Below, in pieces: positions 408-52,600 of a stretch of DNA of 64,000 bases. Below the pieces are notes generated by a model. It searched no databases. It saw only the letters and a program-made list of their open reading frames with translations, and was not told the origin of the DNA. A program made the translations under genes and the position numbers. Within the stretch, counting starts at the first letter, position 1; each line of letters opens with the position of its first letter. The stretch is from sequence record NC_071039.1; one strand, 5' to 3'.

Positions 408-677
408 ATGGATCTGATACTATTTCTTCAACATAATACTGTAGAGATGGACTATAGTGAATGGTACACTCGTTTTAACAACAAGAATGGAGATAGTATA
501 GCTATGATTACAGGTAACGGTCTTAGACTGTATTATAGAAATATCAATAGCTTTCTTGGTATTCTTCATTTACAATACTGTAATTATAATTTTTTCATGC
601 ATGTGGGCAATTATATTTCTTTTACTTTTGCTAATAATAATAGGTTTGTACATGAAATACATGTTGATTTGAAATAA
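408..677 (+). CDS. Microprotein array, long type (MDLILxLQ...GIxHLQ), 89 aa
   Basis: MDLILFLQ...LGILHLQ; motif shared with neighbours. Confidence 0.75.
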   Translation: MDLILFLQHNTVEMDYSEWYTRFNNKNGDSIAMITGNGLRLYYRNINSFLGILHLQYCNYNFFMHVGNYISFTFANNNRFVHEIHVDLK

Positions 678-680
678 TAT

Positions 681-986
681 ATGGATTTCATACTATTACT
701 TCAATCTCATTGCAATGAGATTGTATATACCAATCAAATCATTGATATGCTTAATGCGCATAATAGGCAGTTCGTATATGGAATTACGTTGCCTATGGGA
801 AGAAAACATGTGTCATATAATGCATATTGTTTGTATAATAATTTATGTGATGTGATAGGATTATTGCATATGCAATCTGTTTTATCATTAATAGAAGTTA
901 AACATTTAAAATCATTTTCTGGTAAAACAGATATTATTATTAATATGGTGTTTGTTAACGGTTATCTTCAACATGCTATATTCTAA
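681..986 (+). CDS. Microprotein array, long type, 101 aa
   Basis: MDFILLLQ...IGLLHMQ. Confidence 0.75.
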   Translation: MDFILLLQSHCNEIVYTNQIIDMLNAHNRQFVYGITLPMGRKHVSYNAYCLYNNLCDVIGLLHMQSVLSLIEVKHLKSFSGKTDIIINMVFVNGYLQHAIF

Positions 987-1002
987 TAGTTGTGTCTAAT
1001 AT

Positions 1003-1287
1003 ATGGATTTAATATTATTATTTCAGTATCGTTGTTGTAAGATTTGGTATTCAGATTATATTATAGATATGATCGACTATAGTGATTGTACTATAGTATC
1101 GTTATTACGCCCGCCGAATGGGCGTATGTATGCCTATTGTTCGTGTAATAGTATAAACAACGAAACTAGTATAATGCATTTGCAGAATAGCATACATTCA
1201 TTACAAATAAGTTATAGTACCCGTTCTATAATATGTCGTATGACTAATGTGTATGAAGATCTAATTCAATATATTTGTATACTTTAG
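1003..1287 (+). CDS. Microprotein array, long type, 94 aa
   Basis: MDLILLFQ...SIMHLQ. Confidence 0.75.
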   Translation: MDLILLFQYRCCKIWYSDYIIDMIDYSDCTIVSLLRPPNGRMYAYCSCNSINNETSIMHLQNSIHSLQISYSTRSIICRMTNVYEDLIQYICIL

Positions 1288-1289
1288 TA

Positions 1290-1565
1290 ATGTATTTTAT
1301 CTTGTTTATACAGAGATTGTGTTGTTCGATTAGAAGGGCTTCGCATGGATTCGATATTTTTGATACTAATGAAGTAGCATATTCATTAATAGATCATCAC
1401 GGTTTCAGTATGAAACATTTTGTTTCGTACTCTGTTATAAATGATGTAATAGGAATTATACATTTACAAGTGCATACAAATAAGTTTTATTTTCTTAATG
1501 AAAACCATCAAATGGATATGATTTGTTTTCTAGATAGTAAAGGCGGTCATTTTTTTAGTTTATAG
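1290..1565 (+). CDS. Microprotein array, long type, 91 aa
   Basis: MYFILFIQ...IGIIHLQ; start moved to ATG 1290 by family alignment. Confidence 0.7.
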   Translation: MYFILFIQRLCCSIRRASHGFDIFDTNEVAYSLIDHHGFSMKHFVSYSVINDVIGIIHLQVHTNKFYFLNENHQMDMICFLDSKGGHFFSL

Positions 1566-1577
1566 AGGACTAAATTT

Positions 1578-1841
1578 GTGCTATTAATATTAATGCTTCA
1601 GCGTAATGTCGAATGGATTCTTAATACTGATTGCGAAATTCGACTTGTTCTGCCCGATTATAACACGTTATATCGTTTTCTAATTCAGATACAGAAAATT
1701 AATGGGTATCTAAATTGCCATGCTAGTAATGACATTGTAGGTATGTTTTATTTACAGTACAATTGTGATACTATATCATTTAATAGATTTGATGAATTTA
1801 TGATACTAAACCACAATGGCGTAATAATTTTTGGCTGGTGA
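1578..1841 (+). CDS. Microprotein array, long type, 87 aa
   Basis: GTG start, (M)LLILMLQ...VGMFYLQ. Confidence 0.7.
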   Translation: MLLILMLQRNVEWILNTDCEIRLVLPDYNTLYRFLIQIQKINGYLNCHASNDIVGMFYLQYNCDTISFNRFDEFMILNHNGVIIFGW

Positions 1842-1846
1842 CTAGT

Positions 1847-2137
1847 ATGGATATTATATTGATCCTTAGTAATGAAGTTATAAGAATACAAGGTTGTTTT
1901 TATGATATAGAAACTTTACAAATAAGGTTCTTCAATAAATACGACTCAATATATTTTTGTAATAAAATGGGAGGATTTGTTAACTATAAAACATTTCCCA
2001 ATGAACTACTAAGTATAATTCATTTGCAGCAGAATACACACAGGTTAATAACACAAATTAAATGTATATTTTTTGATAATGTGGATTTTATTTCTATTCA
2101 CTGGGAGACTTTGTTTGACACAGATGAATACGTATAA
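1847..2137 (+). CDS. Microprotein array, long type, 96 aa
   Basis: MDIILILS...LSIIHLQ. Confidence 0.7.
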   Translation: MDIILILSNEVIRIQGCFYDIETLQIRFFNKYDSIYFCNKMGGFVNYKTFPNELLSIIHLQQNTHRLITQIKCIFFDNVDFISIHWETLFDTDEYV

Positions 2138-2141
2138 TGAT

Positions 2142-2368
2142 ATGAATTATATATTACTAATTAGTAACCAGTCTAAATATATTTCGTTGAAGGCACTTGG
2201 ATTAACTGTAAAAACACGTGAACCAAGGTTAACTCATTATATTATATTTTAAATATGAACGAAGAATATGATATATTATATTTGTCTAACAATACTATGC
2301 AAATAACATTTCGTTTTTCAGTATATTGTTTTTATGATAAAACTCGTAGTATTATATATTGTCAATAA
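2142..2368 (+). pseudogene. Frameshifted array member (or sequencing indel)
   Basis: MNYILLISNQ... stops at TAA 2250-2252; the -1 frame continues ...NEEYDILYLSNNT...YCQ to TAA 2368, giving a family-sized product. Confidence 0.5.
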
Positions 2369-2381
2369 GACAGAAATATAA

Positions 2382-2696
2382 ATGGATTTAATATTAACAC
2401 TTCAGCATAAAACTGTGCTAATATCGCAATTTAGTGCATTATTTGTATTTCAAAATATAAACAGTGATACTATATTTTGCTTGGATATAGGTAAACATGT
2501 ATATTATTTTGAAATAATATTCAGGTTATATAATAATAAGAATGGCATGGTGTATTTGCAACATGCCATTAATTCTATTAAGTTTACCTTTAGTTTACAA
2601 TATCATACAATTCGTGGATATTCTAGTATACCATCTATATATATGTATGATAAAAAATATGCTATTGTACACGTACCATATGTTAGGAATACTTAA
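2382..2696 (+). CDS. Microprotein array, long type, 104 aa
   Basis: MDLILTLQ...GMVYLQ. Confidence 0.75.
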   Translation: MDLILTLQHKTVLISQFSALFVFQNINSDTIFCLDIGKHVYYFEIIFRLYNNKNGMVYLQHAINSIKFTFSLQYHTIRGYSSIPSIYMYDKKYAIVHVPYVRNT

Positions 2697-2998
2697 TGGA
2701 TCTTATATTATACATTCAGTACAGTGCTCATAAAATAGAAACTGTTTATAAATCATATCTATTTTATAGTAATAACTATTCACTTTATTACAGACTGTCT
2801 GTATATAAGAGATTATTGGTACCATCGGGTAGTGAATCATATGCAAGGGCTTCGGCTGAATATTCTGCTATTACAGACAAAATAGGAATTATACACTTAC
2901 AATCGAAAACACACGTAATATTATTTGTTATGGATGGTTGTATGTGCATTCACGACAAATCGTATCAAACACTCCATTATATTATACCAAAGTCATAA
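2696..2998 (+). CDS. Microprotein array, long type, 100 aa
   Basis: MDLILYIQ...IGIIHLQ; TAATG coupling on both sides. Confidence 0.75.
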   Translation: MDLILYIQYSAHKIETVYKSYLFYSNNYSLYYRLSVYKRLLVPSGSESYARASAEYSAITDKIGIIHLQSKTHVILFVMDGCMCIHDKSYQTLHYIIPKS

Positions 2999-3255
2999 TG
3001 TTCATAAGTTTTATATTGAATATTCAACGATATACTTCTATTATAGAAATAGTTTCATATAGTAATATAAGATTTTGTAGTTTTCGTCAGTATCCTTTTT
3101 ATAATGTAATAAATGTAATATATGAAATAATTCCACCGCAGCAAATGTTAATACGACTACAATCAAATCTACATATTATCTGTTTTGATTCTGTTTATGA
3201 TAGTATAGTGTTTTGTGATAAAGACGGTGACGAAATACATTGCTGCTTATGGTAG
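2998..3255 (+). CDS. Microprotein array, long type, 85 aa
   Basis: MFISFILNIQ...LIRLQ; TAATG-coupled start. Confidence 0.7.
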   Translation: MFISFILNIQRYTSIIEIVSYSNIRFCSFRQYPFYNVINVIYEIIPPQQMLIRLQSNLHIICFDSVYDSIVFCDKDGDEIHCCLW

Positions 3256-3351
3256 CGTGTTTGCATTTAACGCAAAAACATGTTATACAGTATTGTTTGT
3301 TGAGTATTTTGACATTGTTGTTTCTAAAAATCTTTTATATAAAGGATTAAT

Positions 3352-3489
3352 ATGCATAATATATTTAAATTATCATATTGTACAATTATGTTGAAATTTA
3401 AAATATTATGGGATCAAAAAGTATACCTATGCTCGTTTAAGTCATTGCGGTATACTACCCTATATATTTCTGCAGGTCGTATCAGATAA
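3352..3489 (+). CDS. Microprotein array, short type, 45 aa (not in ORF track)
   Basis: MHNIFKLSYCT...; manual translation. Confidence 0.6.
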   Translation: MHNIFKLSYCTIMLKFKILWDQKVYLCSFKSLRYTTLYISAGRIR

Positions 3490-3612
3490 ATGGTAACAAA
3501 TATATTAGAATTAATGTATGTATGTCACCATACATATAATATAACAACTAACAACTACTATAACATTATCTTCTTAAATAAAGATAATAATATTATCTTT
3601 GTTTTGTATTAA
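3490..3612 (+). CDS. Microprotein array, short type, 40 aa
   Basis: MVTNILELMYVCHH...; ATG directly after previous TAA. Confidence 0.55.
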   Translation: MVTNILELMYVCHHTYNITTNNYYNIIFLNKDNNIIFVLY

Positions 3613-3617
3613 AACAA

Positions 3618-3743
3618 ATGGGAATATTTCTCTTATCACATAATACTCGTTATATTTGTGTTATACATATCGGACGTATTGTATACAAGATTAAGATGTA
3701 TGACAGACATGGCAATTATGTGTTTACAATTAATGTTATCTAA
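3618..3743 (+). CDS. Microprotein array, short type, 41 aa
   Basis: MGIFLLSHNTRY... Confidence 0.6.
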   Translation: MGIFLLSHNTRYICVIHIGRIVYKIKMYDRHGNYVFTINVI

Positions 3744-3794
3744 GAACATATTAAATTATATAGAATTTGGTTGTATGTAATACTGTTTAATAAT

Positions 3795-3929
3795 ATGGCA
3801 ACAGATATTGATAAAATAACATACATTTCATTTAACTCATGCTATATATCAGTTAATCGTTTTGGTGTTATTATATATTATGAGTACGGTAGGTTGATTT
3901 TATATGATGATACCCCCGGGATTATATAA
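3795..3929 (+). CDS. Microprotein array, short type, 44 aa
   Basis: MATDIDKITYISFNSCY... Confidence 0.55.
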   Translation: MATDIDKITYISFNSCYISVNRFGVIIYYEYGRLILYDDTPGII

Positions 3930-4068
3930 GAACGTATTCTACATACAGTATAATGTACGTCATATAAGCATATATTATTTTGATGCATGTGAATGTAATA
4001 TATTACAAGTAGAATGCAATAATTTTCTTACTCTAACATATAAATTAAATGAAAAAACCAATAAGTAA
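3904..4068 (+). CDS. Microprotein array, short type, 54 aa
   Basis: MMIPPGLYKNVFYIQYNVRH... Confidence 0.55.
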   Translation: MMIPPGLYKNVFYIQYNVRHISIYYFDACECNILQVECNNFLTLTYKLNEKTNK

Positions 4069-4198
4069 TATATTTGGATTATCGTTTAATACGCACTGGT
4101 TTAATACCAATTACATATCTAGTGCTCATTGTTTAATACTTTATAATGTGTCGTCATATCCTATACATTATGTTCGTTTACACACAAACAAGCGTTAA
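4049..4198 (+). CDS. Microprotein array, short type, 49 aa
   Basis: MKKPISNIFGLSFNTH... Confidence 0.6.
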   Translation: MKKPISNIFGLSFNTHWFNTNYISSAHCLILYNVSSYPIHYVRLHTNKR

Positions 4199-4203
4199 CA
4201 CTT

Positions 4204-4338
4204 ATGTCGCCGGAATTAATTCATAATATAATTTGCATTCAACACTATCTTAATAGATGGTATACTAGAATATCCACAACAGGTATTAATGTGTATTCAG
4301 ATTCATATGTTAGAATTAGAATAAATGTTCATAAATAA
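4204..4338 (+). CDS. Microprotein array, short type, 44 aa
   Basis: MSPELIHIIICIQHY... Confidence 0.55.
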   Translation: MSPELIHNIICIQHYLNRWYTRISTTGINVYSDSYVRIRINVHK

Positions 4339-4492
4339 AAATATTATAAATCACGATATACATTATGATATGTTGCAGGTATCTTTATGCGCACATAGAA
4401 TAGATTCATCGCTATGTAGCACATATCTATTGGCATGCATTTATAATAGTAATGAAAAAATTATTATAATTAGTGTTGCATATCTAAGATGA
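4325..4492 (+). CDS. Microprotein array, short type, 55 aa
   Basis: MFINKNIINHDIHYDMLQVS...; ATGA overlap with next. Confidence 0.5.
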   Translation: MFINKNIINHDIHYDMLQVSLCAHRIDSSLCSTYLLACIYNSNEKIIIISVAYLR

Positions 4493-4647
4493 ATGGTATA
4501 AAAGATATAATAGAATTTTCATCGAATACATACGAAATATGTGCCAATACAGCAAGACTTAGAGATATAGTATACTACTCGATACTCATGAAGACAAAAG
4601 ACGGTCTTGCATTTTATATGGTAGACTCGTTTTCATATATAACATGA
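4489..4647 (+). CDS. Microprotein array, short type, 52 aa
   Basis: MNGIKDIIEFSSNTY...; ATGA overlaps both sides. Confidence 0.6.
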   Translation: MNGIKDIIEFSSNTYEICANTARLRDIVYYSILMKTKDGLAFYMVDSFSYIT

Positions 4648-4781
4648 CCAGTATCCTTGAATGTTCTTACAATACTTCTAATATTATGTTTCGTTTTTGT
4701 AAAAACAGTGACATTTTAGTTGTGAACTTTCTAAACAAAAATGCTGACATACATTTCATTGTAATAATTAGATACAAATAA
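4644..4781 (+). CDS. Microprotein array, short type, 45 aa
   Basis: MTSILECSYNTS... Confidence 0.6.
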   Translation: MTSILECSYNTSNIMFRFCKNSDILVVNFLNKNADIHFIVIIRYK

Positions 4782-4818
4782 ACATATCGTTAATTACTAA
4801 TACATAGGAGAGTAATAA

Positions 4819-4953
4819 ATGAATAGAGCAGCAAAGAAAAATGTTTCTGTATTTGTTATTCAGAATCATACTTTTAGAGTTCATGTTGTGCGATATGATC
4901 CTGCGAGAATTTCAATATATCTCTCACTTGTACATAATTGCGTTGCATCTTAA
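4819..4953 (+). CDS. Microprotein array, short type, 44 aa
   Basis: AGGAG RBS upstream; MNRAAKKNVSVFVIQNHT... Confidence 0.6.
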   Translation: MNRAAKKNVSVFVIQNHTFRVHVVRYDPARISIYLSLVHNCVAS

Positions 4954-5061
4954 GAACTATATCTGCATAATGTAGGTTACATTTGCATGTATAGGATTAT
5001 CTTTCATATAATATATGCTTATTAACTATACGACATGTATTGAATTACTTTATAGTATTGT

Positions 5062-5208
5062 ATGATTCGTAAAAATATAGTTCTAATATCACATAACACG
5101 TCAAAAATAATATTAGAAAAAAGAACAAGTAAAGTATTACGTGTTTCTATGTTTAAATCGATTGGAAAATACTACTACCATTATTATACGGCGTGTGGAA
5201 ATATATAA
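5062..5208 (+). CDS. Microprotein array, short type, 48 aa
   Basis: MIRKNIVLISHNTS...; TAATG overlap with next. Confidence 0.6.
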   Translation: MIRKNIVLISHNTSKIILEKRTSKVLRVSMFKSIGKYYYHYYTACGNI

Positions 5209-5348
5209 TGCAAGATCATCATTTCACTACACTGTTGTATATGTCTAATCGTGCAGATAGAATAAAGATTTTTCGACAGCCTTCCTGTCTTATTGTATAT
5301 ATTAAGTCAGGTATGTTATATATTAATAAACAATTCTTAAAATGTTAG
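5208..5348 (+). CDS. Microprotein array, short type, 46 aa
   Basis: MQDHHFTTLLYMSNRA... Confidence 0.55.
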   Translation: MQDHHFTTLLYMSNRADRIKIFRQPSCLIVYIKSGMLYINKQFLKC

Positions 5349-5515
5349 AATATATAGATACTCTCAAATATAATTACATTTTAACTGTATGCAGCGGTGT
5401 AGAGTCTATATCATTTGAATCATTTACTAGATCAGTGATATCAGTTTCCATAATATATAATAATATTACTATCTTTCCGTGCCAAACTACACGAACTATA
5501 CTGTATGGTGTATAA
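5342..5515 (+). CDS. Microprotein array, short type, 57 aa
   Basis: MLEYIDTLKYNYILTVCS... Confidence 0.5.
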   Translation: MLEYIDTLKYNYILTVCSGVESISFESFTRSVISVSIIYNNITIFPCQTTRTILYGV

Positions 5516-5639
5516 TCTTATTTTTATTTCTTTTAATGTTTCTTTAATTATTTTTTCTATTTTTAATAAAACATTCGAAGTTTATATTTATGGAAAAATG
5601 TTATTGGTAATTTATTATACAGGACTGCATATATGTTAG
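5505..5639 (+). CDS. Microprotein array, short type, 44 aa
   Basis: MVYNLIFISFNVS... Confidence 0.55.
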   Translation: MVYNLIFISFNVSLIIFSIFNKTFEVYIYGKMLLVIYYTGLHIC

Positions 5640-5785
5640 ATATATTGCTACGGTTCCAACGCAGAGTGGATACAATTAAGGTGGAGTTAATATGGCGTCA
5701 CTTGCATTTTTATGAAAAAGCCGGCGAGGAGTTAGAGTTATTTCATATTATATTTCTGCCGCCCGATCACCGAAGTATTAATTAA
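5633..5785 (+). CDS. Microprotein array, short type, 50 aa
   Basis: MLDILLRFQRR... Confidence 0.55.
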   Translation: MLDILLRFQRRVDTIKVELIWRHLHFYEKAGEELELFHIIFLPPDHRSIN

Positions 5786-5919
5786 CAAAAACAAGTTGTA
5801 TTTTTCGGCATAAAAATTTATGAATAAAGATACAAACAAAGAATCACCTATTATTAAAGAATTATATTTTATATTAAGATTGTAAGTAAAATAAAATACT
5901 TTTAGAATCTAAAACTAAA

Positions 5920-6069
5920 ATGATCGATTGGGTATTTAAATTGTCTGCTAGTTGCTACGAAATAGACGGACAACACAGTGAGTCAATAAGAATATATAAT
6001 TCATATTGTCTTTTAGGAACTATACAATGTTATTGTGCTCAGTTAAAAATAAATTTATATAAATTTTAA
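5920..6069 (+). CDS. Microprotein array, short type, 49 aa
   Basis: MIDWVFKLSASCY... Confidence 0.55.
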   Translation: MIDWVFKLSASCYEIDGQHSESIRIYNSYCLLGTIQCYCAQLKINLYKF

Positions 6070-6105
6070 TATTGTGGGAAGAATTCTTTTAAATAGGCAT
6101 ACTAT

Positions 6106-6249
6106 ATGAATGATCTATTACACTACCAACTCACATTATGTTCCATATCTTTGCAGAAAGCTCTTTTTAAGTCAGGCAATGTGTATTACATTCTAATTGA
6201 ACGTAACGACAGCGGTAGGTATTCCCGAGATGTAAAAATACTTAAATGA
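6106..6249 (+). CDS. Microprotein array, short type, 47 aa
   Basis: MNDLLHYQLTLCS... Confidence 0.5.
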   Translation: MNDLLHYQLTLCSISLQKALFKSGNVYYILIERNDSGRYSRDVKILK

Positions 6250-6250
6250 T

Positions 6251-6421
6251 ATGCGTATATTTGTAATATCACAAAATTGTATGACTATCAGACTTTTTTA
6301 TCATACATATTTCATTAAAGATGTAAATTATGATTCAATTTGTGTATTATATAAAACGAATAGTAGAATTGTAATACATCCGAGTTTTACAGTAGATGAA
6401 TATATTCGATCTGTCTTATAA
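6251..6421 (+). CDS. Microprotein array, short type, 56 aa
   Basis: MRIFVISQNCM... Confidence 0.6.
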   Translation: MRIFVISQNCMTIRLFYHTYFIKDVNYDSICVLYKTNSRIVIHPSFTVDEYIRSVL

Positions 6422-6584
6422 TTCTTCATTTATTTTGATGAAATCGAATAGATTATACATTAGTAACTATAATTATTCTGTAGGGGCTACATATGTATTA
6501 CCTGCAATAACAAAATATATACATCAAACATTCTATGTAAACGCTGCAATATATAGATTTTTAGATACAGGTATACTAGTATGA
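6396..6584 (+). CDS. Microprotein array member, 62 aa
   Basis: MNIFDLSYNSS; ATGA overlap with next. Confidence 0.7.
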   Translation: MNIFDLSYNSSFILMKSNRLYISNYNYSVGATYVLPAITKYIHQTFYVNAAIYRFLDTGILV

Positions 6585-6769
6585 AATTCAATATATTTAA
6601 ATTGCAAAGAAGATGTCACATTATAAATTGTCATTTTTATGACATTCTTAGATTTTCAAAACCTACATATTTTCGAGATGCTGATAGAATAACTATATTT
6701 TCATTAATAGGTACTAATAGTATCAGAATTTACGAGGATATGTATAAAGGATATGCACAAACCATATGA
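6581..6769 (+). CDS. Microprotein array member, 62 aa
   Basis: MKFNIFKLQRRC; ATGA overlaps. Confidence 0.7.
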   Translation: MKFNIFKLQRRCHIINCHFYDILRFSKPTYFRDADRITIFSLIGTNSIRIYEDMYKGYAQTI

Positions 6770-7050
6770 TTGAAATATTAATATTTTCGAGTGTTAGTGA
6801 TTATATTAGTATAAGACATGATATGGCACGGCTATATAATCTTAATGGTATTAGTGAATTAATATTTGTATCAAAACCATACAAATATATTATATTAACT
6901 AATTTAAAAAATCGTATAGGTATATTCTGTATTTCAAATATAATAAGTGAAAGGGTGATGGGAGATATTACTAGTAACGAATGTTGGGCTTATCCTTGGC
7001 CTCCAGATACTGGCATAGATGTATATATTGATTTCCTGTATAAAAATTGA
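6766..7050 (+). CDS. Microprotein array member, long type, 94 aa
   Basis: MIEILIFSS...IGIFCIS. Confidence 0.7.
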   Translation: MIEILIFSSVSDYISIRHDMARLYNLNGISELIFVSKPYKYIILTNLKNRIGIFCISNIISERVMGDITSNECWAYPWPPDTGIDVYIDFLYKN

Positions 7051-8242: not shown

Positions 8243-8520
8243 AAGTTATGCGCTGTTGCATACGTAAATACCTCCTATGTTGTTTAGATATGTCGATTCT
8301 GGTATAACCAGATAGACCTAAGGATGATGCTAGTGATTCCTTAGTATTGTATATTCTAGCTGAGTATAAAGAGTAAGGGGCTTTATACAAATAACAATTC
8401 CTTAGGCAAGATATACCGCTCCGTTGTGCTGACGAGCATAATTTGCCCAGATACAGAGCACGTGACTGTTCTGAGGAGCATTTATATCAGAAAGGCAGAC
8501 TTATGTTTGCCTTTCTTTTT
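8243..8520 (+). ncRNA. Candidate sRNA of about 280 nt (RNA-B)
   Basis: Promoter upstream, no ORF, hairpins 8318-24/8338-44, 8364-71/8381-88, 8418-22/8475-79; ends in terminator agaaaggcagac-ttat-gtttgcctttct-tttt. Confidence 0.6.
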
Positions 8521-8535
8521 GAGCAAATATTCTCT

Positions 8536-8664
8536 TATTCATTTCCTTATTCATTTCCTTATTCATCTCTATTTCATTTGTCACTTCCTTATTCACTTCC
8601 TTATTCATCTCTATTTCATTTGTCACTTCCTTATTCACTTCCTTATTCATCTCTATTTCATTTG
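8536..8664. repeat. Pyrimidine-rich tandem repeat, 12-bp subunits within a 42-bp higher-order unit
   Basis: Unit ccttattcatctctatttcatttgtcacttccttattcactt at 8557, 8599, and partial at 8641. Confidence 0.9.
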
Positions 8665-8669
8665 TTATT

Positions 8670-44448: not shown

Positions 44449-44463
44449 ATCTTCTTTTCTTTT
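44431..44463. terminator. Bidirectional terminator at the early/late convergence
   Basis: aaaagaaaagaagatt-a-aatcttcttttctttt (16-bp arms). Confidence 0.75.
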
Positions 44464-45682
44464 ATATTATTAAAATTGTTTTTGTATAAGTATACGTATT
44501 ATTGTCGTATGTAGTTACTCGCCACGTTATGTCTTGCGTCTGTCCCACTGTGCCGGAATTTGACGAAAAAGTCCATGTTCTGTTAACTACAACAGGATCG
44601 TTAGGTCTTACATAATTAACAGAGCCCTTTGAATTTGTTCTAGTTGTATTAGATCCTACAGGCAAAGGGTATGCAACTCCGTCAAACACTATTTCTTCAG
44701 ATACGATTGCTTGATAGCCGAATGTAAATATTGCAGATCCGGTTATGCTAGCACCCTGCTGCACTTGGTTAGGACCAGAAATGTTCATAGTAGGAACTAT
44801 TGCTGCACTATTTGTTAAATTATATAACAGTGCATAAGTAGGCGATATAACAGGATATATTGCACTAGAAATATGTTCTATTACTGTAAATTGCAAATTT
44901 CCTTGAACTATAGTTTGTGTGTCAAATTCCGTAAATATTACATAAAATGATATAACAGATGGACTGTTTAACTTTGCTTGAACAGACATCTGGACGTTGT
45001 CTATTTTAAGTATAAAAACTGTTTGATATGTATTATTTAATTCATAGAACGTTTTAGTACATGGTTTGCTGTTAGTTGGTACGCTTGGTGCAGATATTCC
45101 AAAAAATACAACAGAATTTATATTTTCTAAAAGCTCCTTCATCTTTGTAGAAATAGTAGTGTTTGGCGAGGTCAACTGAGGCGTTATTCTTATTGCGCCG
45201 CCTGTATTGAAAAATTGTCTTGCATGATTATTATCATTAAATGTGACAGTAAACTCAGAATATACAGATTGATCCCACGGAGCACTCGTTGGTCTACTAG
45301 ATGTTAGTTTAGTAGTATAAGTCGGATTTGCTAATTTACCTCTATTAGTTTCTAATAAAGATAATGCATCGCCTAACGGTAATAGTGTACCGGGCGGTTG
45401 CATTACATCATAGTTATATGCAGCAATTGTATTATTTGAAGATACAATTGCTGGCCAGGCTGCGCCTAGTAACGATGTGCCTTGATGTAATGCAATAGTT
45501 TGCATAGTAGAAAACAGTGTATTCCAGTTAGATGCACTGATTATATTTCCTATAGCAACTTGTTGTACAGGAACAGTCTGTCCGTATCCGTAACTACCTG
45601 TTCCTGTGCCTAAAATATTTTGTATTTTAGAAGAAAATAGATTATAATCGGCAGCCTGTATTACCTGATTTCTTGCGTACAT
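44462..45682 (-). CDS. Virion structural protein (baseplate/tail associated), 406 aa
   Basis: In structural operon; I.A.DYN...G.G..GYGQ N-terminus and F.....AR.FFN.GG.IR motif typical of jumbo-myovirus tail proteins. Confidence 0.8.
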   Translation of the reverse strand: MYARNQVIQAADYNLFSSKIQNILGTGTGSYGYGQTVPVQQVAIGNIISASNWNTLFSTMQTIALHQGTSLLGAAWPAIVSSNNTIAAYNYDVMQPPGTLLPLGDALSLLETNRGKLANPTYTTKLTSSRPTSAPWDQSVYSEFTVTFNDNNHARQFFNTGGAIRITPQLTSPNTTISTKMKELLENINSVVFFGISAPSVPTNSKPCTKTFYELNNTYQTVFILKIDNVQMSVQAKLNSPSVISFYVIFTEFDTQTIVQGNLQFTVIEHISSAIYPVISPTYALLYNLTNSAAIVPTMNISGPNQVQQGASITGSAIFTFGYQAIVSEEIVFDGVAYPLPVGSNTTRTNSKGSVNYVRPNDPVVVNRTWTFSSNSGTVGQTQDITWRVTTYDNNTYTYTKTILII

Positions 45683-47118
45683 TATTTAGAGCCTATTGCA
45701 CATAAAACTAATTCTACATCCGATGTTGATTTAGAACTAATAGCACGTCCTATAATACTATATACACCCATAGGACCTAACTGTTGTAATTCTGACATTG
45801 TTATTCTGCGGGCAACACCAGGAACATCACTTGCAACTAATCTATCGCCCTTAGATATGGGTCCTATTACTTTCACGGGTACTCTTCCTGCTAATGCGAC
45901 AAACGGATGAGTGTCATCTGTTCCTGCGTCGGCATTCATCATTATGCCTGCACTTGTACTTATTACACCGAATACTTCTGTATCTGCATCGAGTGTTGTC
46001 ATTGTTATTTCTTTAGAACCACCCAATTTAACTACAGTTCCTGTATCTAATTCTCCATCAGCTTCATATCTTTCTGCAAGATCTGCATATTTACTTGATG
46101 TAGACGTACCTATTAAATTAGTTCCATAAATATTTTGGAAAGGACTAGTTTGACTTCCTATAGAAGAAGTAGTTGTTCTAGCATTTATTTTAGATGTTGT
46201 TATTTCGTTTATGTATGATAGGCCAAATGCATTATTAACATCACCGATTGTGGTAGTATCAGGTACACCAGGAATTATCTTATCTCTTGCATATAATTCC
46301 ATACCGTATATTTTAGAATATCTATTTGTATCTGAACCTAAAGTAAACGCATTAGTTGTGCTAGGTATTAAGTTAGTAATAACACCATAACCCGGCTGCC
46401 CGGATCCGACCGATAAACTATTAGCATACATCCCGCTTGCATATATACCTGCAATTCTACTCGAAGCACTACCTAGAGTATCAGTTGTGTTTTTCATCCC
46501 AACTGCTGTATCACTAAGAGGTATAAAACCTAAAGTAATATTACCGTTTGATCTAGAAAATACAATTTCTTGTGTTGCAAGAAATCTTCTTGCATATATA
46601 TCTGCAAATGTTAAACTTGCCGAACCTATAGAATACTGAGAAGTTGTACTAGGTAGTACATTACCGCCTATAGTAGTAGCACCTAATTGGGTTGTTCCTG
46701 CAACTAAATTAGTCGTATTAACTGTACTAAAATAACCGACTCTGAATCTATTTGCGGCAGCGCCTAAATCTACTGTGTTTGTTGCAGGAATTATTGTAGA
46801 ATCTACTGTACTTATTAATGATTTCCACGATGCATGATTTGGGTTTGCACTAGTGTTATCTGTAGAATTGACAGGATCGTTTCCTATCCACACTTTCATT
46901 ACATTAGTTCTAGTATCAAACCAAAGTTGCCCTTTTATTGCACCCCGAGGAGATGTATTATTTGCAAAGTTTTCTAATGTTCTTATTGTAGACTGTGCTA
47001 AAGATTGTCCATATGCAGGTGTTATTCTACCAACTAAGCTAGTAGAATATACGTTAGATATAGTACCATCAGGTATTGCTATTATATTTCCGTTTGACTT
47101 TGTAATTGTATATGACAT
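45682..47118 (-). CDS. Tail fibre/baseplate-associated protein, 478 aa
   Basis: N-terminal ENFA...P...GQLWFD domain, T/S-rich fibre repeats, C-terminal YADLAERY...AGRVPVKV domain. Confidence 0.85.
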   Translation of the reverse strand: MSYTITKSNGNIIAIPDGTISNVYSTSLVGRITPAYGQSLAQSTIRTLENFANNTSPRGAIKGQLWFDTRTNVMKVWIGNDPVNSTDNTSANPNHASWKSLISTVDSTIIPATNTVDLGAAANRFRVGYFSTVNTTNLVAGTTQLGATTIGGNVLPSTTSQYSIGSASLTFADIYARRFLATQEIVFSRSNGNITLGFIPLSDTAVGMKNTTDTLGSASSRIAGIYASGMYANSLSVGSGQPGYGVITNLIPSTTNAFTLGSDTNRYSKIYGMELYARDKIIPGVPDTTTIGDVNNAFGLSYINEITTSKINARTTTSSIGSQTSPFQNIYGTNLIGTSTSSKYADLAERYEADGELDTGTVVKLGGSKEITMTTLDADTEVFGVISTSAGIMMNADAGTDDTHPFVALAGRVPVKVIGPISKGDRLVASDVPGVARRITMSELQQLGPMGVYSIIGRAISSKSTSDVELVLCAIGSK

Positions 47119-47120
47119 TA

Positions 47121-48866
47121 TTAACCTACCCTAATCCATACGTATGCACATTGCCACGGAGATTGGTTATTATGTTTTCCGTCGCCGCCGACAGAAGAAG
47201 TTAGAGGCGCTGTAGTAACGCTCTGGAATCCGTAACCGTCTTCGACCCTAGCAGATTGACCTCCGACTGAACCGAATCTACCCGATTGCGAAACGTTATT
47301 TCCGAAACCTTGTATATGCTGATGCGCTGGCATCTCTGCTACAGTAAGTTTATGGAAATAAGTTCCTCCCGTTGATCCAGCAGCATATCCACCCGAATCT
47401 CCATTTGCATCAGTAGTAGATCCGTTCCCGACTATAGATCTGCCCTGTGCATACGGATTCCAGACCCCGAACCCTAAATAAGTTGCTGGGTTTGCCGAAT
47501 TAGTTGCGTTAATGTATACAGAACCTATAGGATATACTAATTCTCTAGTAGCTGCAATGGCAGTTAAAATTTTCTGATCTACTTGGTCTTGGGTATAAAC
47601 TGTAGGAAGATTGCCAGTATGCCATATTCTTTGACCATTTATATATAGTGCGCCGTCATTGACGCCATCTGTATGCAGTCGAACATCGTAATCAGTAGAA
47701 GAGTTCGTGGCATGATGAAAATCTAAATACCTAGCTATTTCTGTAACACCAGATGTACTAACAACGGGAATCTTGTTAGCCATATTTCCAGGAACACCGG
47801 GTGCTATAACATCGTGTGACGCTGCTGTGCCTAATCCAACTACAGTTGTGTTCATTGTAACGTTTGCAGTACCGTCTAATACTACTGAACCTAAAACATT
47901 TCCAGTTAGTGTTAATGTTCTACCAAACGTCCATTTATCTGCAGAAGCTGCTCTAGTTGCATTAGTCGCACTTGATGCATTACCTACGAAATTTACAGAA
48001 TACATGTTTCTATAGCGCCGAGCAGTAGAACCTAAGTCATACGTATTATCTATTACAGGCATCAAATGAGAATTTAAACCTTGATTTGTGCCAGTTCCTA
48101 GTGTTAATAACGTCGTATTTACATCTTGGCCGAAGAATCTTGTTACTCTATATGAAGTACCACCTATAATCCATGTACCCCTACAGAATAAATCGTTATT
48201 AGGTCCGTTTTCTAATGCTATAACAGAAGAACCATTAGTAAAAGTTATGCCACCAGAGTTAATCCATGCTTTCTTTGTATATAAATTATCCCATTGTTTT
48301 GCAGACGAACCCAAACTAGACGATGTTATAAACTGACAAGGATTCGGCATAGTCGATTGGGTTTCGGGTAATATGTCGCCTTGAACTGAAGTATTTCCTA
48401 CAACTGTAAGAGCAGTTCTGTTAGAACTAGATGTACATTTTCTTAAAGTTGCTTCTGTTCCGAAAAAGCCCACTGCATAGATATTTTTAAATCTAAGGGT
48501 AGGAGACCCTATATTAATTGTATTATCAACCTTTGGCAATAGATCTTGTATTAATGCTCCGCCAATAGGAGTCCACATTTCGTTAGATCTATCTGCACTA
48601 GTGTTATCGTTAGGAGATAAAGGGTCTGCTCCTTTCCATACTTTAAGTATTTCCTGCTGAGTATCATACCACAGTTGGCCCTTAATGGCCCCCCGAGGCG
48701 GAATTGTATTGGCAAAATTTTCTAAATGCCTAATTGTACTCTGTGCTATTTCTCCGCCATACGGTGATATGTCTTTGCCTAGTAATGGCAAAGTATAATT
48801 CTCTAATATCGTTTGGTCTGCAACAGTAATAGGGGTGCCGTTACTTTTGGAAATATTATATGACAT
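47121..48866 (-). CDS. Tail fibre protein, 581 aa
   Basis: Same N-terminal domain; fibre motifs (YLDFH, IWHTGN); C-terminal YPIGSVYI...GxW...GR..VG...GG...H.LT..EMP.H gp10/collar-like domain. Confidence 0.85.
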   Translation of the reverse strand: MSYNISKSNGTPITVADQTILENYTLPLLGKDISPYGGEIAQSTIRHLENFANTIPPRGAIKGQLWYDTQQEILKVWKGADPLSPNDNTSADRSNEMWTPIGGALIQDLLPKVDNTINIGSPTLRFKNIYAVGFFGTEATLRKCTSSSNRTALTVVGNTSVQGDILPETQSTMPNPCQFITSSSLGSSAKQWDNLYTKKAWINSGGITFTNGSSVIALENGPNNDLFCRGTWIIGGTSYRVTRFFGQDVNTTLLTLGTGTNQGLNSHLMPVIDNTYDLGSTARRYRNMYSVNFVGNASSATNATRAASADKWTFGRTLTLTGNVLGSVVLDGTANVTMNTTVVGLGTAASHDVIAPGVPGNMANKIPVVSTSGVTEIARYLDFHHATNSSTDYDVRLHTDGVNDGALYINGQRIWHTGNLPTVYTQDQVDQKILTAIAATRELVYPIGSVYINATNSANPATYLGFGVWNPYAQGRSIVGNGSTTDANGDSGGYAAGSTGGTYFHKLTVAEMPAHQHIQGFGNNVSQSGRFGSVGGQSARVEDGYGFQSVTTAPLTSSVGGDGKHNNQSPWQCAYVWIRVG

Positions 48867-49626: not shown

Positions 49627-52600
49627 CTACGGAGTTAATCCACTTCCAGGTCTGTTTTGTAAGAATATAGCCCAGGGAGTTGTACTTAGAGCAAGTCCAC
49701 CGTTATTATTTTCCCATATGTACTTACCTGTATCTTCTTGTTCTTGTTTATACGAACCGTCAAATACTCTAGTATATAAAGGCACAGTTGTATCTCCATT
49801 TGTTCCGGTATATACAGATGTCCCTAATGATCCCCTAGTCAATCCGTGTAATTTATTACCGCGTTTATATAAGAATTCTATACGTTCGGTTCCTATCCAA
49901 ACTACACCGGGTTTACTACTAGACGGATCTACTATTGCAGATGCATCTACTAACTCTATAGATTTATCTGTAAGTTTTAATGGTTTAGCTAATCTAGTGC
50001 TATAATAATCAGAAATCCTAACATAGTGTGTTTCGCCCATTTCATCTAGGTGTACCCTGAAGCTTAGTGGTTTGGCAGGATATTTGATTACAACATTATC
50101 ACCTTGCATTGTAACTGGATTTATGAAATTGTGTTGTTCATTAAATACAGCTACCCACGAATTATTAACAATATCGGTTACTTTTTGAATGTTTGTTTCA
50201 GTCCAATCGATTCGTATAATATCGCCTGCGTTAAGAGTACCCTTATATACTACTAATAATTTAGCATTATCACCTGTTATATTTGTGAATTCTATAGTGT
50301 AGTCTTTGTCTTTAGTTTTACTAATTCCATTTATATAAACTGTCTCTCCTACAAAATTACGTATACTAGTATCTACAGTGAAAAGTTTTGTATTTGTATA
50401 CAACATTTCTTTACTCTTACGAGTATATAAATTATTAGACACACTGATCATTCTTTTGTTAGCAGCAACAAACATATCTATTGTCTGCAACTTATATTCA
50501 GATGTAGTAACAGAAGTTATGTTATATTTGTTCATTACATACGAAACATAATCATCTAACTTCATTATAGAATAAGATTGATATTTAACTGTGATTACAG
50601 TTCCTGCGCTCGGTGCAATTTCAAAATTAATAACAAGTTCAGGAGTAATTCCACTATTATCTACAACTACTGTATAGCCATACATTGCAACTCCGCTCGA
50701 ATAAACACCCTGGACTCTGTTGGGGAGAATATTCATACCTGTATGTATCATAGTATCTACACCATTTGCAGTAATATCTACGAACTTGTATGTAAGTTGT
50801 CCCGATGCCTGTGCGACTACTTCGTCAGGATTAGCAATAGTTGGCATATCTATAGGTAGTAGATACACACTATCTGCATTTTCTGGAGAATCTATGCTTG
50901 GATCCCAAGCAAATGTATCCCATGTGTTTATATCTTTATTTTGTTTTGTATTTCTTAAATCTACAGTTATGTATCCTTGAGTATTATCCCTTACTACTGA
51001 ATTAGTATCAAACCTATAATCGTTAGCTACAGTAGTTTGTGAAGTATAATTATCTTTATAGACTACTGATATAATATCACCTGTACTGAAACTAGTAGGA
51101 TATGCAATGACTACGGTATTAATGCCGTTGTTATCTATATTAAACTTCAATTTGTCTTCAGTATTAGGATCTCCATTTATAACTAACCCTATTATGTCCT
51201 GTAACACTATTTTTTCAGTTAATACTATTTTAACAAACGGATTCGAAGTATCTGTATTAGTAACAACATACTGAACTTCTGTAGTTTTCGCATTAGAATC
51301 TACAATAATAACCATGTTCTCTGTAGGAGATACTAATGCTTGCTCTTCCGGGATTCCTTCTCTTACGTTAGTATCTTCAAAATATGCACCATCTATTATA
51401 GGCTTACTAGTGTCACTGTTAAATGTATTAGTAACAGGATTAAAAGTAAACACTATTTCGTCACCTTCTACTGCGCCAGGAACTTCTATAGATGTAAAAT
51501 TAGAACCTTTTGTAGCAGTGTATTGTGTAGAAGATCCATTTAGTGTTACGCCAGTTATATCTACTACATATCGTATGACAAATGTTGTTTTTCCTTCCGA
51601 TATAACTGTTGCACTTGTTTCTGTATAATTGGGAGTAATAACATACGTAGCAGTAGAGGCATCCCATGCATATTCGTCCCATTTTGTACTATCCCACGGT
51701 CTGCTAAATATGTACTCAAAATCTTTAGCATCTATTACCTTACCTTCATAGTCACACCCATATTCGTCACCGAAACGTTCGTTGAATTGGAATAAAACAT
51801 CTCTCTCGCCGGCTGAACTTTCGTATAGACGTTCAGTAAACGAACTGTATGGATATGAACCGTTTATGGGTGCGGCACTTAAAATATCCCGTTGCAGGTC
51901 AGTTTGATATAAGATATATCTTCCAGCAGCGCCAGAATATTGTAAGTATTCAGTCCATAATTGACGATTGCCTTCTTGTATTGTGCCCGGTATACCCCAA
52001 CGTAATTGACCCCACTTAGGTATACCCCAGCCGCCTGCGATTTTACCAGCCGGATCTATTGCTAAATCAAATATAGGTTTAAGTACTTTACCGGGTTGTC
52101 TAGCATTATATTCTAACCTCATTTCCTCTAACGGAGTTTGGGTGAATTCTGTACCAGAATATAATTTTATTTTAGATCCTATTTTAATAAGAGTATTTGA
52201 TTTAAATGTTACTTGTAGATAACCATTCTCGTTTATTTCTACATCATATTGCTCTTTAGTAATAGTTTTTCCATCTACCTTAATTTTCCAAACAGATTTT
52301 ATATCGGTGTAGTTTACTATTATTACATCACCTGCATCAGGAGTAGAAGGAAGTATTATAAATGTTGCATTTAATATTGTAGTGAATGTGTAACCTTCTA
52401 TTTCTTGCCCATTTATTGTTACAGATGTTATTCTAGAAATATCTTTATTAGCACCTAATTGATATTGAGAAATTCCATCTAATGCTATAAATTCATCATT
52501 AGGAGTATTTGCTATAAGAACTACTTGGCCACCGGTACCGATAAATGTTTGGTCGCCTAAGTCTATATAATTCGGTTTAGTTATGTAACCGCATTGTACT

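Follow-up and report, generated by a model that had tools for sequence, protein, structure and literature searches.

The window analysed here is a 64,000-bp stretch, 100% identical to positions 1–64000 of the record of Pseudomonas phage vB_PaeM_PA5oct (MK797984.1; 286,783 bp). At its left end, positions 408–7050 carry a tandem array of 33 small genes, all on the plus strand, which very probably form a real protein-coding family. Sequence comparison extends this family to at least 52 genes (3807 codons), namely the 33 of the array and 19 more, gp442–gp460, near the opposite end of the record; this is a lower bound, counted over those two regions. The members are built from one small unit, apparently present once in the shortest genes (“microgenes,” with products of 36–62 amino acids, aa) and twice in genes of ~95 aa. 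The existence of the genes is not new, as they can be found in GenBank; what is newly described is their paralogy, unit structure, extent, and selection signature. A text search of the published descriptions of PA5oct, MIJ3, and Paride found neither the word “paralog” nor any account of the family, its units, how far it reaches across the repeat boundary, or its signature of selection.

Layout and coding status of the array

A blastn search with 408–7050 returned PA5oct at identical coordinates (100%) and nine further phages of Wroclawvirus, the sole genus of the family Arenbergviridae, at 96–97.5% identity. The array lies at the very left end of the direct terminal repeat, which is annotated as 39,080 bp long (GenBank; PMC7318152). 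GC content is 26.8% in both array blocks, compared to 36% in the rest of the window. GenBank lists 32 coding sequences (CDS) in 408–7050, gp2–gp33, all on the plus strand and all but gp23 labelled “hypothetical.” An additional open reading frame (ORF) of the family, at 2142–2252 (+), is without annotation in PA5oct and is annotated in PAC2, Cassandra, Paride, Deifobo, and Ettore. Together these make 33 co-oriented genes, the number estimated in an earlier inspection of the letters by a model (the sequence-only reading).

According to the ORF list and three-frame translation, ten genes of 85–104 aa lie within 408–3255, with two short ORFs among them. Downstream of 3255 there are 21 ORFs of 40–62 aa up to position 6769, followed by one 94-aa ORF ending at 7050. 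The roughly 19 ATG-initiated ORFs of 40–57 aa that the sequence-only reading had picked out in this apparently empty interval are exactly gp12–gp30 (3352–6421). Its remark that they are invisible is true of a long-ORF track only, since PA5oct, PAC2, and four Swiss phages have annotated microgenes; most of them were missed in the annotations of MIJ3, Callisto, 30-2, and 30-3. Because uncurated pipelines miss most microgenes, these may be among the 49 CDS that the PA5oct study added manually, guided by RNA-seq (PMC7318152). Fifteen of 31 junctions between genes overlap, including five of the 4-nt ATGA type and three of the 1-nt TAATG type; the other junctions leave 0–5 nt (six), 6–20 nt (three), or more than 20 nt (seven) between genes. 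The suggestion that the genes are joined by overlaps is thus accurate for about two thirds of the junctions (21 of 31 overlap or have a gap of at most 5 nt) and inaccurate for the remainder.

Such a tiling is not expected by chance. The plus strand of 3256–6769 contains 22 ATG-initiated ORFs of at least 40 aa and the minus strand contains none, while the same count in 500 dinucleotide-preserving shuffles averaged 2.4, with a maximum of 7. Most of the products also share a motif close to the N-terminus, which we defined as [ILVFM][ILVFM].[ILVFCM][SQ].[NHRYS] with its start required within the first 14 residues. It is found in 15 of the 21 microgenes and 7 of the 10 long genes, compared to a mean of 0.08 and a maximum of 1 in the shuffles. 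The pattern was composed after the sequences had been seen, which implies some inflation of this difference, but not by two orders of magnitude. The shared motif proposed by the sequence-only reading is therefore well founded, and shuffled AT-rich DNA, which that reading named as a possible refutation, yields neither the tiling nor the motif. No other position inside the microgenes matches the motif; among the ten long genes, the strict pattern occurs at least once in eight and twice in four (near residue 4 and near residues 50–60).

Conservation of the motif is at the protein level, as indicated by synonymous variation among the codons at its Q/S position (CAA 12, CAG 8, TCT 10, TCA 6, AGT 2, TCG 1) and by the absence of any DNA-level period when the array was run through Tandem Repeats Finder. 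This agrees with the earlier impression of little DNA identity among copies. A matrix trained solely on the N-termini of long genes detects gp8, gp27, and gp32 and misses most microgenes; in microgenes the motif is shifted and rich in S, and the looser pattern and sequence profiles were therefore required.

Substitutions among relatives are a further indicator that these ORFs are translated and selected. The region was aligned from ten genomes with pairwise identities of 96.1–98.6%, and the ratio of nonsynonymous to synonymous substitution rates (dN/dS, or omega) was obtained by the Nei-Gojobori method. For the 21 microgenes, variable sites are distributed 73/47/97 over codon positions 1/2/3 (chi-square ~17, p ~2e-4), and omega is 0.38 in frame vs. 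0.71 and 1.18 in the two other frames. The long genes have 98/90/123 variable sites by codon position and an omega of 0.46. As a control, 14 adjoining genes of the terminal repeat (10.1–15.6 kb) gave an omega of 0.32 in frame, and 0.66 and 1.01 off frame. The microgene value is close to that of the control genes, and therefore microgenes evolve like ordinary PA5oct early genes.

Stop-creating substitutions are depleted in frame, with 1 observed vs. 8.5 expected in microgenes (Poisson p ~0.002) and 3 vs. 15.6 in long genes (p ~1e-4), in contrast to off-frame counts of 10 vs. 9.2, 16 vs. 9.8, 11 vs. 14.6, and 20 vs. 17.2. Eighteen of the 21 microgenes are intact with identical bounds in all ten genomes. 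Disrupted or re-bounded copies number 9 of 189 for microgenes and 9 of 81 for long genes, or 0.95 and 1.16 disruptions per 1000 codon-genomes, while off-frame and minus-strand null ORFs from the same DNA have 6.6 and 8.9; disruption is thus 7–9 times rarer in array genes. Frame-specific substitutions, depleted stops, and ORFs kept open across ten genomes all support the selection on products that had been deduced from the motif, and the ortholog dN/dS comparison proposed at the time gave values well below 1. Stop-codon recoding was considered as a cause of the ORF-poor appearance of the region and rejected, as the standard code suffices for a 3857-aa ORF at 49627–61200 (minus strand) and for other long ORFs, and the microgenes are conserved as short ORFs in ten genomes.

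Unit structure, extent, and distribution of the family

Nine clear long genes align at 18–32% identity (alignment A1). Every protein query used here and below was one single ORF as it stands, with no stop read-through and no joining of frames. When a profile of the long family was compared to 1287 six-frame stop-to-stop pieces, the best matches other than training sequences were gp8, gp32, gp21, gp30, and gp13 (E = 1e-3 to 0.1), all of them array microgenes and all in their annotated frame. Using hhalign, microgenes matched the N-terminal halves of long genes with P = 1.1e-5 and the C-terminal halves with P = 7e-4. These matches are weak singly and strong jointly, and they place the microgenes in the same family as the upstream two-unit “MDLILxLQ” genes, of which the sequence-only reading had taken them to be a continuation. 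The two halves of the long genes also matched each other (P = 3.2e-4). This internal duplication is reflected in the strict motif at both sites in four of ten long genes, and in a helix-plus-three-strands arrangement that is repeated in a low-confidence model.

That model, made with AlphaFold2 for gp5, has a helix and three strands, a disordered linker, and again a helix and three strands, with a predicted local distance difference test score (pLDDT) of 60. The microgene product gp30 was modelled with its paralogs as the alignment and has a helix at residues 3–8, strands at 12–16, 19–23, 29–35, and 40–42, and a second helix at 50–55 (pLDDT 80; predicted template modelling score, pTM, 0.56). 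The unit is accordingly ~45 residues long and is predicted to have a short N-terminal helix that carries the motif, followed by a beta-meander of three or four strands. “Beta-rich,” as the products had been called, is apt for the meander and less so for the conserved motif itself, which AlphaFold places in the short helix. Profile and motif comparisons support the view that the ~95-aa genes hold two units and the 36–62-aa microgenes one. Scoring of microgenes by half type gave only gp13 as clearly C-type and eight, including gp30 and gp32, as N-type. Because the two types do not alternate clearly, we do not claim that each pair of microgenes is a split long gene. The family proteins have a median isoelectric point (pI) of 7.9.

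Searching 1.84 billion representative proteins with the long-family profile gave ten matches, nine of them Wroclawvirus-type. One match (P0010) is encoded on metagenomic contigs ~1 kb upstream of homologs of gp1 and gp2, where it ends a long run of ~95-aa genes. The corresponding run in PA5oct is gp442–gp460, at 280,681–286,427 of the record and directly before the right terminal repeat. Ten of these genes are matched by the long-family profile at E = 4e-16 to 1e-3, among them gp457–gp460, gp450, and gp447. A unit profile trained on the window only has 12 plus-strand matches of at least 10 bits in gp442–gp460, and a single one in the remaining 66 kb examined on both strands. The extent of 408–7050 given by the sequence-only reading is correct as far as it goes and too small, as the array resumes across the terminal-repeat boundary. 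The sole interruption is ~760 bp that contain gp461, the repeat boundary, short tandem repeats, and the minus-strand gene gp1. The most similar members (gp457–gp460 with gp2–gp10, z = 10–20) flank the boundary, and similarity between paralogs falls with distance along the array, from a mean z of 1.65 for neighbours to 0.40 at a separation of 30, which is the pattern predicted by stepwise tandem duplication.

Outside Wroclawvirus, no relatives were found among 5.8 billion clustered proteins or, by tblastn, in 50,697 phage records, and an IMG/VR search with one family protein likewise gave none. Pfam and PHROGs returned nothing at E < 0.04 for the long genes and nothing credible for the microgenes; a sequence-profile search of the PDB had 0 matches, and Foldseek had no significant match in the PDB or BFVD (best E 0.57, 0.21, and 0.16). 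The family is thus shown, by these searches, to be confined to this jumbo-phage genus, and the statement that no described family resembles it holds for Pfam, PHROGs, and the PDB by sequence or fold. The sole profile match from outside Wroclawvirus, a metagenomic protein with a six-fold PF18780 repeat (P0009), was judged spurious. The PF18780 repeat is similar in length (~50 residues) and begins with a similar hydrophobic-x-L-Q heptad, but the match is confined to that heptad, five times at ~9 bits each, and Pfam scans give the array proteins no PF18780.

Gene order and sizes are nearly constant in the ten phages, which come from Europe and Asia. The only whole-gene copy-number difference seen concerns gp2, which exists as two allelic types with 72% aa identity; phage 30-2 has both in tandem (325–870 of its stretch). 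At the unit level, the gp11 locus is shorter by 76 + 43 bp in seven relatives, in five of which a 141-bp (46-aa) ORF is annotated, or approximately one unit less; gp12 is annotated at 79 aa in four relatives and at 45 aa in others. Between phages, the array is no more divergent than the adjoining early region (96.4–97.5% identity), and structural genes are 97.5–99.8% identical. The term “hyper-divergent” therefore fits paralogs (at most ~30% identity), and not orthologs (96–97.5%).

Gene accordions of the poxvirus type consist of tandem copies of host-interaction genes that are recent, near-identical, and unstable in number. The array differs on each count, being old and nearly fixed across ten genomes, and the proposal of a gene accordion is not borne out, given paralogs that are 18–32% identical, no tandem repeat at the DNA level, and conserved order and sizes. 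Highly divergent paralogs in a nearly fixed array instead indicate an old, stable multigene family with slow birth-and-death.

Expression and possible function

In the main text of the PA5oct study, the phage is described as dependent on host RNA polymerase, and early transcription as almost exclusively from the Watson strand; at 5 min, gp34–gp105 and gp450 are named there as highly transcribed (PMC7318152). Since gp450 is one of gp442–gp460, at least one family member is expressed early by this account. Scans for promoter and terminator consensus sequences gave 87 vs. 76 and 4 vs. 2.3 sites in the sequence and in shuffles, respectively, and thus nothing above shuffles in this AT-rich DNA. Neither array block contains a match to the strict pattern TTGAC-N-TATAAT, and tRNA and Rfam scans of the window found nothing. 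The mean energy of the duplex with the anti-Shine-Dalgarno (anti-SD) sequence is −1.55 kcal/mol for array genes vs. −4.63 kcal/mol for 83 other plus-strand genes (p = 9e-6). With SD sites mostly missing and about two thirds of junctions overlapping or abutting, coupling or re-initiation, together with SD-independent initiation, would be needed for translation. Initiation of the latter kind on AU-rich RNA is established for Gram-negative bacteria in general.

The reading we prefer is an early host-interaction function. Host polymerase would drive early expression of the array, and the AU-rich messages would be translated with initiation largely by coupling or re-initiation where ORFs abut or overlap. 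The products, which are small and fairly hydrophobic, would serve as diversified binders of host proteins, in host takeover or counter-defence, and single-unit products would probably pair to mimic the two-unit form. The family may have grown by old tandem duplication and by fusion and fission of units, and slow turnover would continue today in the form of the two gp2 types, the additional copy in 30-2, and the one-unit gp11 of seven relatives. What suggests a host interaction is the location at the genome end, within a terminal repeat rich in early genes, the small size of the products, and the restriction to one genus, as well as extreme diversity of paralogs on a conserved scaffold and the gp2 dimorphism with omega above 1. 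As a whole, we would put this mechanism slightly short of an even chance. Anti-defence inhibitors, decoys, or sponges, the examples offered by the sequence-only reading, are a guess at such a function, and its single polycistron expressed at entry is conjectural. The authors of PhageExpressionAtlas report no DefenseFinder anti-defence match in PA5oct (bioRxiv 10.64898/2026.03.30.715471).

Two kinds of known systems are relevant for comparison. Terminal multigene families of lineage-restricted ORFans, which are thought to handle the host, occur in large DNA viruses and jumbo phages. The array resembles them in having paralogs of one orientation arranged in tandem close to the genome ends, copies that diverge deeply, and modest differences in copy number between isolates. 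It is unlike them in its far smaller unit (36–62 aa single, ~95 aa double), in straddling the boundary of a direct terminal repeat, and in its share of the annotated genes; no relation to any of them was found in sequence or fold. Such families are thus an already known kind, and the distinctive features here are the tiny unit, the one-/two-unit series, and the fraction of the gene count (~11%). The host-takeover module of Bacillus phage SPO1 and the pre-early region of phage T5 are clusters of small genes, of host-shutoff or uncharacterised function, in a long direct terminal repeat that are read by host RNA polymerase. Unlike the array, these modules are not one paralogous family; their early promoters are strong and their ribosome-binding sites ordinary. 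The terminal repeat of PA5oct is also rich in early genes, but gp2–gp33 are unnamed among those described as highly transcribed (PMC7318152), and most are without SD sites.

Several observations weigh against a host-interaction function or temper it. The list of highly transcribed early genes begins with gp34, and the main text of the study makes no mention of gp2–gp33 (PMC7318152). The strength of SD sites in the array cannot be told from that at random array positions (p = 0.19), which could mean poor translation. An “ESI-MS/MS” note is attached to no family member, though this note covers virions only. Confidence in the model of the two-unit protein is low (pLDDT 60), and selection is moderate, with omega near or above 1 at gp2, gp6, gp13, and gp32 and low power per gene. 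Finally, the argument for a role at the host is drawn solely from position, size, diversity, and analogy, and the pairing of single units is conjecture.

A more elaborate form of the pairing idea seems quite unlikely to us: instead of independent inhibitors, the single-unit microproteins would be halves, each pairing for the most part with what the adjoining coupled gene encodes to form two-unit modules, so that ~22 microgenes would give a combinatorial repertoire of binders, and one-/two-unit fusion and fission (as at gp11 and gp12) would tune it to variable host targets such as defence systems.

An alternative is that the proteins act within the phage, as regulators or assembly factors, in the form of nucleic-acid-binding or oligomerising modules on its AT-rich DNA or transcripts, or in replication or packaging close to the genome ends, and not on host proteins. 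The position of the array at and across the terminal-repeat boundary, beside short tandem repeats, would suit this role, as would small proteins with the median pI given above, and the two-unit model has a weak, non-significant Foldseek resemblance to sliding-clamp half-domains (TMq 0.47–0.50, E ~2). However, no DNA-binding family or fold was detected in these searches, the proteins are not notably basic, and a housekeeping role is not expected to need ~52 copies at 20–30% identity. In the protein searches above, the family is also absent from the related jumbo phages of the RaK2/PBECO4 type that are named in PMC7318152 and share core machinery with PA5oct. Overall, we regard a phage-internal role as unlikely.

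The array could also encode injected internal proteins, with the N-terminus as a T4-like capsid-targeting signal and variable bodies packed in the head and delivered with the DNA. The internal-protein locus of T4 varies among relatives and encodes very divergent small proteins with a common short N-terminal sequence, a hallmark that the array shares. For PA5oct, T4-like genes of the head and baseplate have moreover been described, along with a prohead protease (PMC7318152). In contrast to a T4-type tag, the array motif recurs in the middle of several two-unit proteins and is predicted to form the first helix of the fold unit, which makes it part of a repeated fold. A cleavage-type site ([LIV]xE) follows the motif in just 7 of 52 members, and none is recorded as detected in virions by mass spectrometry, although 93 proteins were identified there (PMC7318152). 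Family genes are encoded on the early strand, and one of them belongs to the early class. The combination of targeting sequence, conserved protease site, and virion product expected of T4-type internal proteins was not found, and we consider this explanation very unlikely.

A further possibility is that the microgenes are decaying remnants, two-unit genes split by stops or frameshifts into functionless short ORFs. A pair of microgenes is about as long as one long gene (roughly 325 vs. 285 bp), gp13 matches the C-half profile and several others the N-half profile, the ORF structure of gp11 and gp12 varies among relatives, and SD sites are missing, all of which would fit decay. This is largely refuted already by the conservation data given above: 18 of 21 microgenes intact in ten genomes, disruption far below that of null ORFs, one stop-creating change where 8.5 are expected, and a codon-position bias and omega as in early genes. 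Moreover, almost every microgene has an ATG a few residues ahead of the motif, which is not expected from random breakage, and N-type and C-type classes show no clear alternation. Decay is thus highly improbable.

That the DNA itself is what functions (as an AT-rich exonuclease buffer, a decoy for host AT-binding silencers, or a spacer for recombination or packaging), with incidental ORFs, is scarcely credible: the low GC content, the position at the genome end across the repeat boundary, and the absence of the array from the highly transcribed early genes named in the main text (PMC7318152) would suit it, but it leaves unexplained the strand-specific ORFs (22 vs. 0) and a protein motif written in varied synonymous codons, the scans of the array gave neither a DNA-level repeat nor any enrichment of promoter or terminator signals, and frame-specific stop depletion and third-position bias refute incidental ORFs.

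Individual genes, neighbouring features, and significance

All genes described here are on the plus strand, and “kept” denotes the same ORF bounds intact among the ten aligned genomes. The left part of the array consists mainly of two-unit genes. Those in the long-gene alignment or profile A1 include gp2 (408–677, 89 aa; omega 1.23, two allelic types), gp3 (681–986, 101 aa; omega 0.54), its closest paralog gp4 (z = 19.6; 1003–1287, 94 aa; omega 0.45, kept in ten of ten, motif at residues 4 and 57), gp9 (2382–2696, 104 aa; omega 0.45, tblastn matches in Wroclawvirus genomes only), and gp10 (2696–2998, 100 aa; omega 0.56, kept in ten of ten). The lowest omega among the two-unit genes, 0.11, belongs to the modelled gp5 (1290–1565, 91 aa), which is kept in all ten, as is gp6 (1578–1841, 87 aa, GTG start as annotated; omega 0.88, motif at residues 4 and 56). 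The motif of gp7 (1838–2137, 99 aa; omega 0.20, kept in nine of ten) starts at an internal Met that other annotators chose as the start. The last of this group, gp11 (2998–3255, 85 aa; omega 0.31), has two units in PA5oct and is the locus that is shorter in seven relatives.

Two single-unit genes are interspersed among these. The unannotated ORF at 2142–2252, which we call gp7.5 (36 aa), is a 111-bp CDS in five relatives, with a motif-like N-terminus and gp15 as its best paralog (z = 5.8). Its neighbour gp8 (2255–2368, 37 aa; omega 0.33, kept in ten of ten) is the top non-training match of the long-family profile (E = 1e-3).

The microgenes proper begin with gp12 (3352–3489, 45 aa), a training member of the unit profile (29 bits) with the 79-aa form in four relatives, and gp13 (3490–3612, 40 aa), which scores 19.6 bits with the C-half profile of the long genes and has an omega of 1.85 from few sites. 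Next are gp14 (3618–3743, 41 aa; motif at residue 3, omega 0.25), gp15 (3795–3929, 44 aa; omega 0.72, best paralog gp8 at z = 6.8), gp16 (3904–4068, 54 aa; motif at residue 11, five of five variable sites at codon position 3), gp17 (4049–4198, 49 aa; motif at residue 8, omega 0.74), gp18 (4204–4338, 44 aa; motif at residue 9, omega 0.72), gp19 (4325–4492, 55 aa; weak motif, omega 0.15), and gp20 (4489–4647, 52 aa; motif at residue 7, omega 0.43), the last being annotated in all ten phages. All nine are kept in ten of ten genomes; gp21 (4644–4781, 45 aa; motif at residue 4) has the same bounds in five, with a 150-bp form in the others.

Kept in all ten are also gp22 (4819–4953, 44 aa; motif at residue 11, omega 0.23, best paralog gp26 at z = 9.7), gp23 (5062–5208, 48 aa; motif at residue 6, omega 0.25), gp24 (5208–5348, 46 aa; motif at residue 9, omega 0.16), gp25 (5342–5515, 57 aa; omega 0.06, seven of eight variable sites at codon position 3), and the very hydrophobic gp26 (5505–5639, 44 aa; motif at residue 5, omega 0.65). 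The “phosphoglucomutase” label of gp23 in PA5oct and PAC2 is a mis-annotation: the protein has no Pfam or PHROG match, and the gene is a microgene of this family. A long-type N-terminus distinguishes gp27 (5633–5785, 50 aa; same bounds in seven of ten), which scores 15.4 bits on the long-gene N-terminal matrix.

Toward the right end are gp28 (5920–6069, 49 aa; motif at residue 5, omega 0.45) and gp29 (6106–6249, 47 aa; omega 0.46), both kept in ten of ten, and gp30 (6251–6421, 56 aa; omega 0.10), the modelled representative. The two 62-aa microgenes gp31 (6396–6584; motif at residue 3, omega 0.41) and gp32 (6581–6769; motif at residue 5, long-family profile E = 0.018) are again kept in all ten. 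The array closes with gp33 (6766–7050, 94 aa; omega 0.42), which has the same bounds in six of ten genomes and a 312-bp form in the others; its membership in the family is weakly indicated, as its N-terminus is only loosely motif-like and its profile scores are near noise.

Several features elsewhere in the window and at the repeat boundary were noted in passing. Short tandem repeats (periods of 21, 10, 16, and 25 bp) at 50–131 and at 286,453–286,725 of the record flank the start of the terminal repeat and may mark a terminase or repeat boundary; the site is labelled “CRISPR” in Paride and Deifobo, almost certainly an artefact of repeat finding. The terminal repeat, at 26–35% GC, is interrupted by GC-rich islands (42–57% GC) at ~9.0–9.9, 15.7–18.1, 28–29, 34–35, and 36.2–38 kb. 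The segment at 15.7–16.6 kb matches ~140 other, unrelated Pseudomonas phage records at 90–99% identity, and by such comparisons the islands appear to have been acquired recently from GC-rich phages of P. aeruginosa. A near-perfect tandem repeat (42 bp, three copies) at 8539–8665 lies within the “extensin-like” gp37, directly downstream of the highly transcribed ncRNA001 (8263–8498). Finally, the 3857-aa ORF adjoins T4-like baseplate genes at 44462–48866 and 61207–63879 (Gp10_C at E = 1e-23 and, weakly, Gp6_C-III), where the structural module begins outside the repeat.

For the biology of PA5oct, a candidate for therapy, these results mean that a single undescribed family accounts for at least 52 of the 461 genes annotated in this jumbo phage, or about one in nine, and its share per virion is higher because 33 members lie in the duplicated terminal repeat. 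They also demonstrate that ORFs of 36–62 aa, largely missed by four of ten annotation pipelines, can be confirmed as genes from comparative data alone. The natural series of one- and two-unit forms of a minimal helix-plus-sheet module should help research on how small proteins evolve and on the fusion and fission of genes. If the products do not target host functions, it would have to be explained why a phage maintains so many genes with weak signals at the end of its genome; if they do, the family would offer a large number of small, so far unexploited binders of proteins from Pseudomonas aeruginosa.

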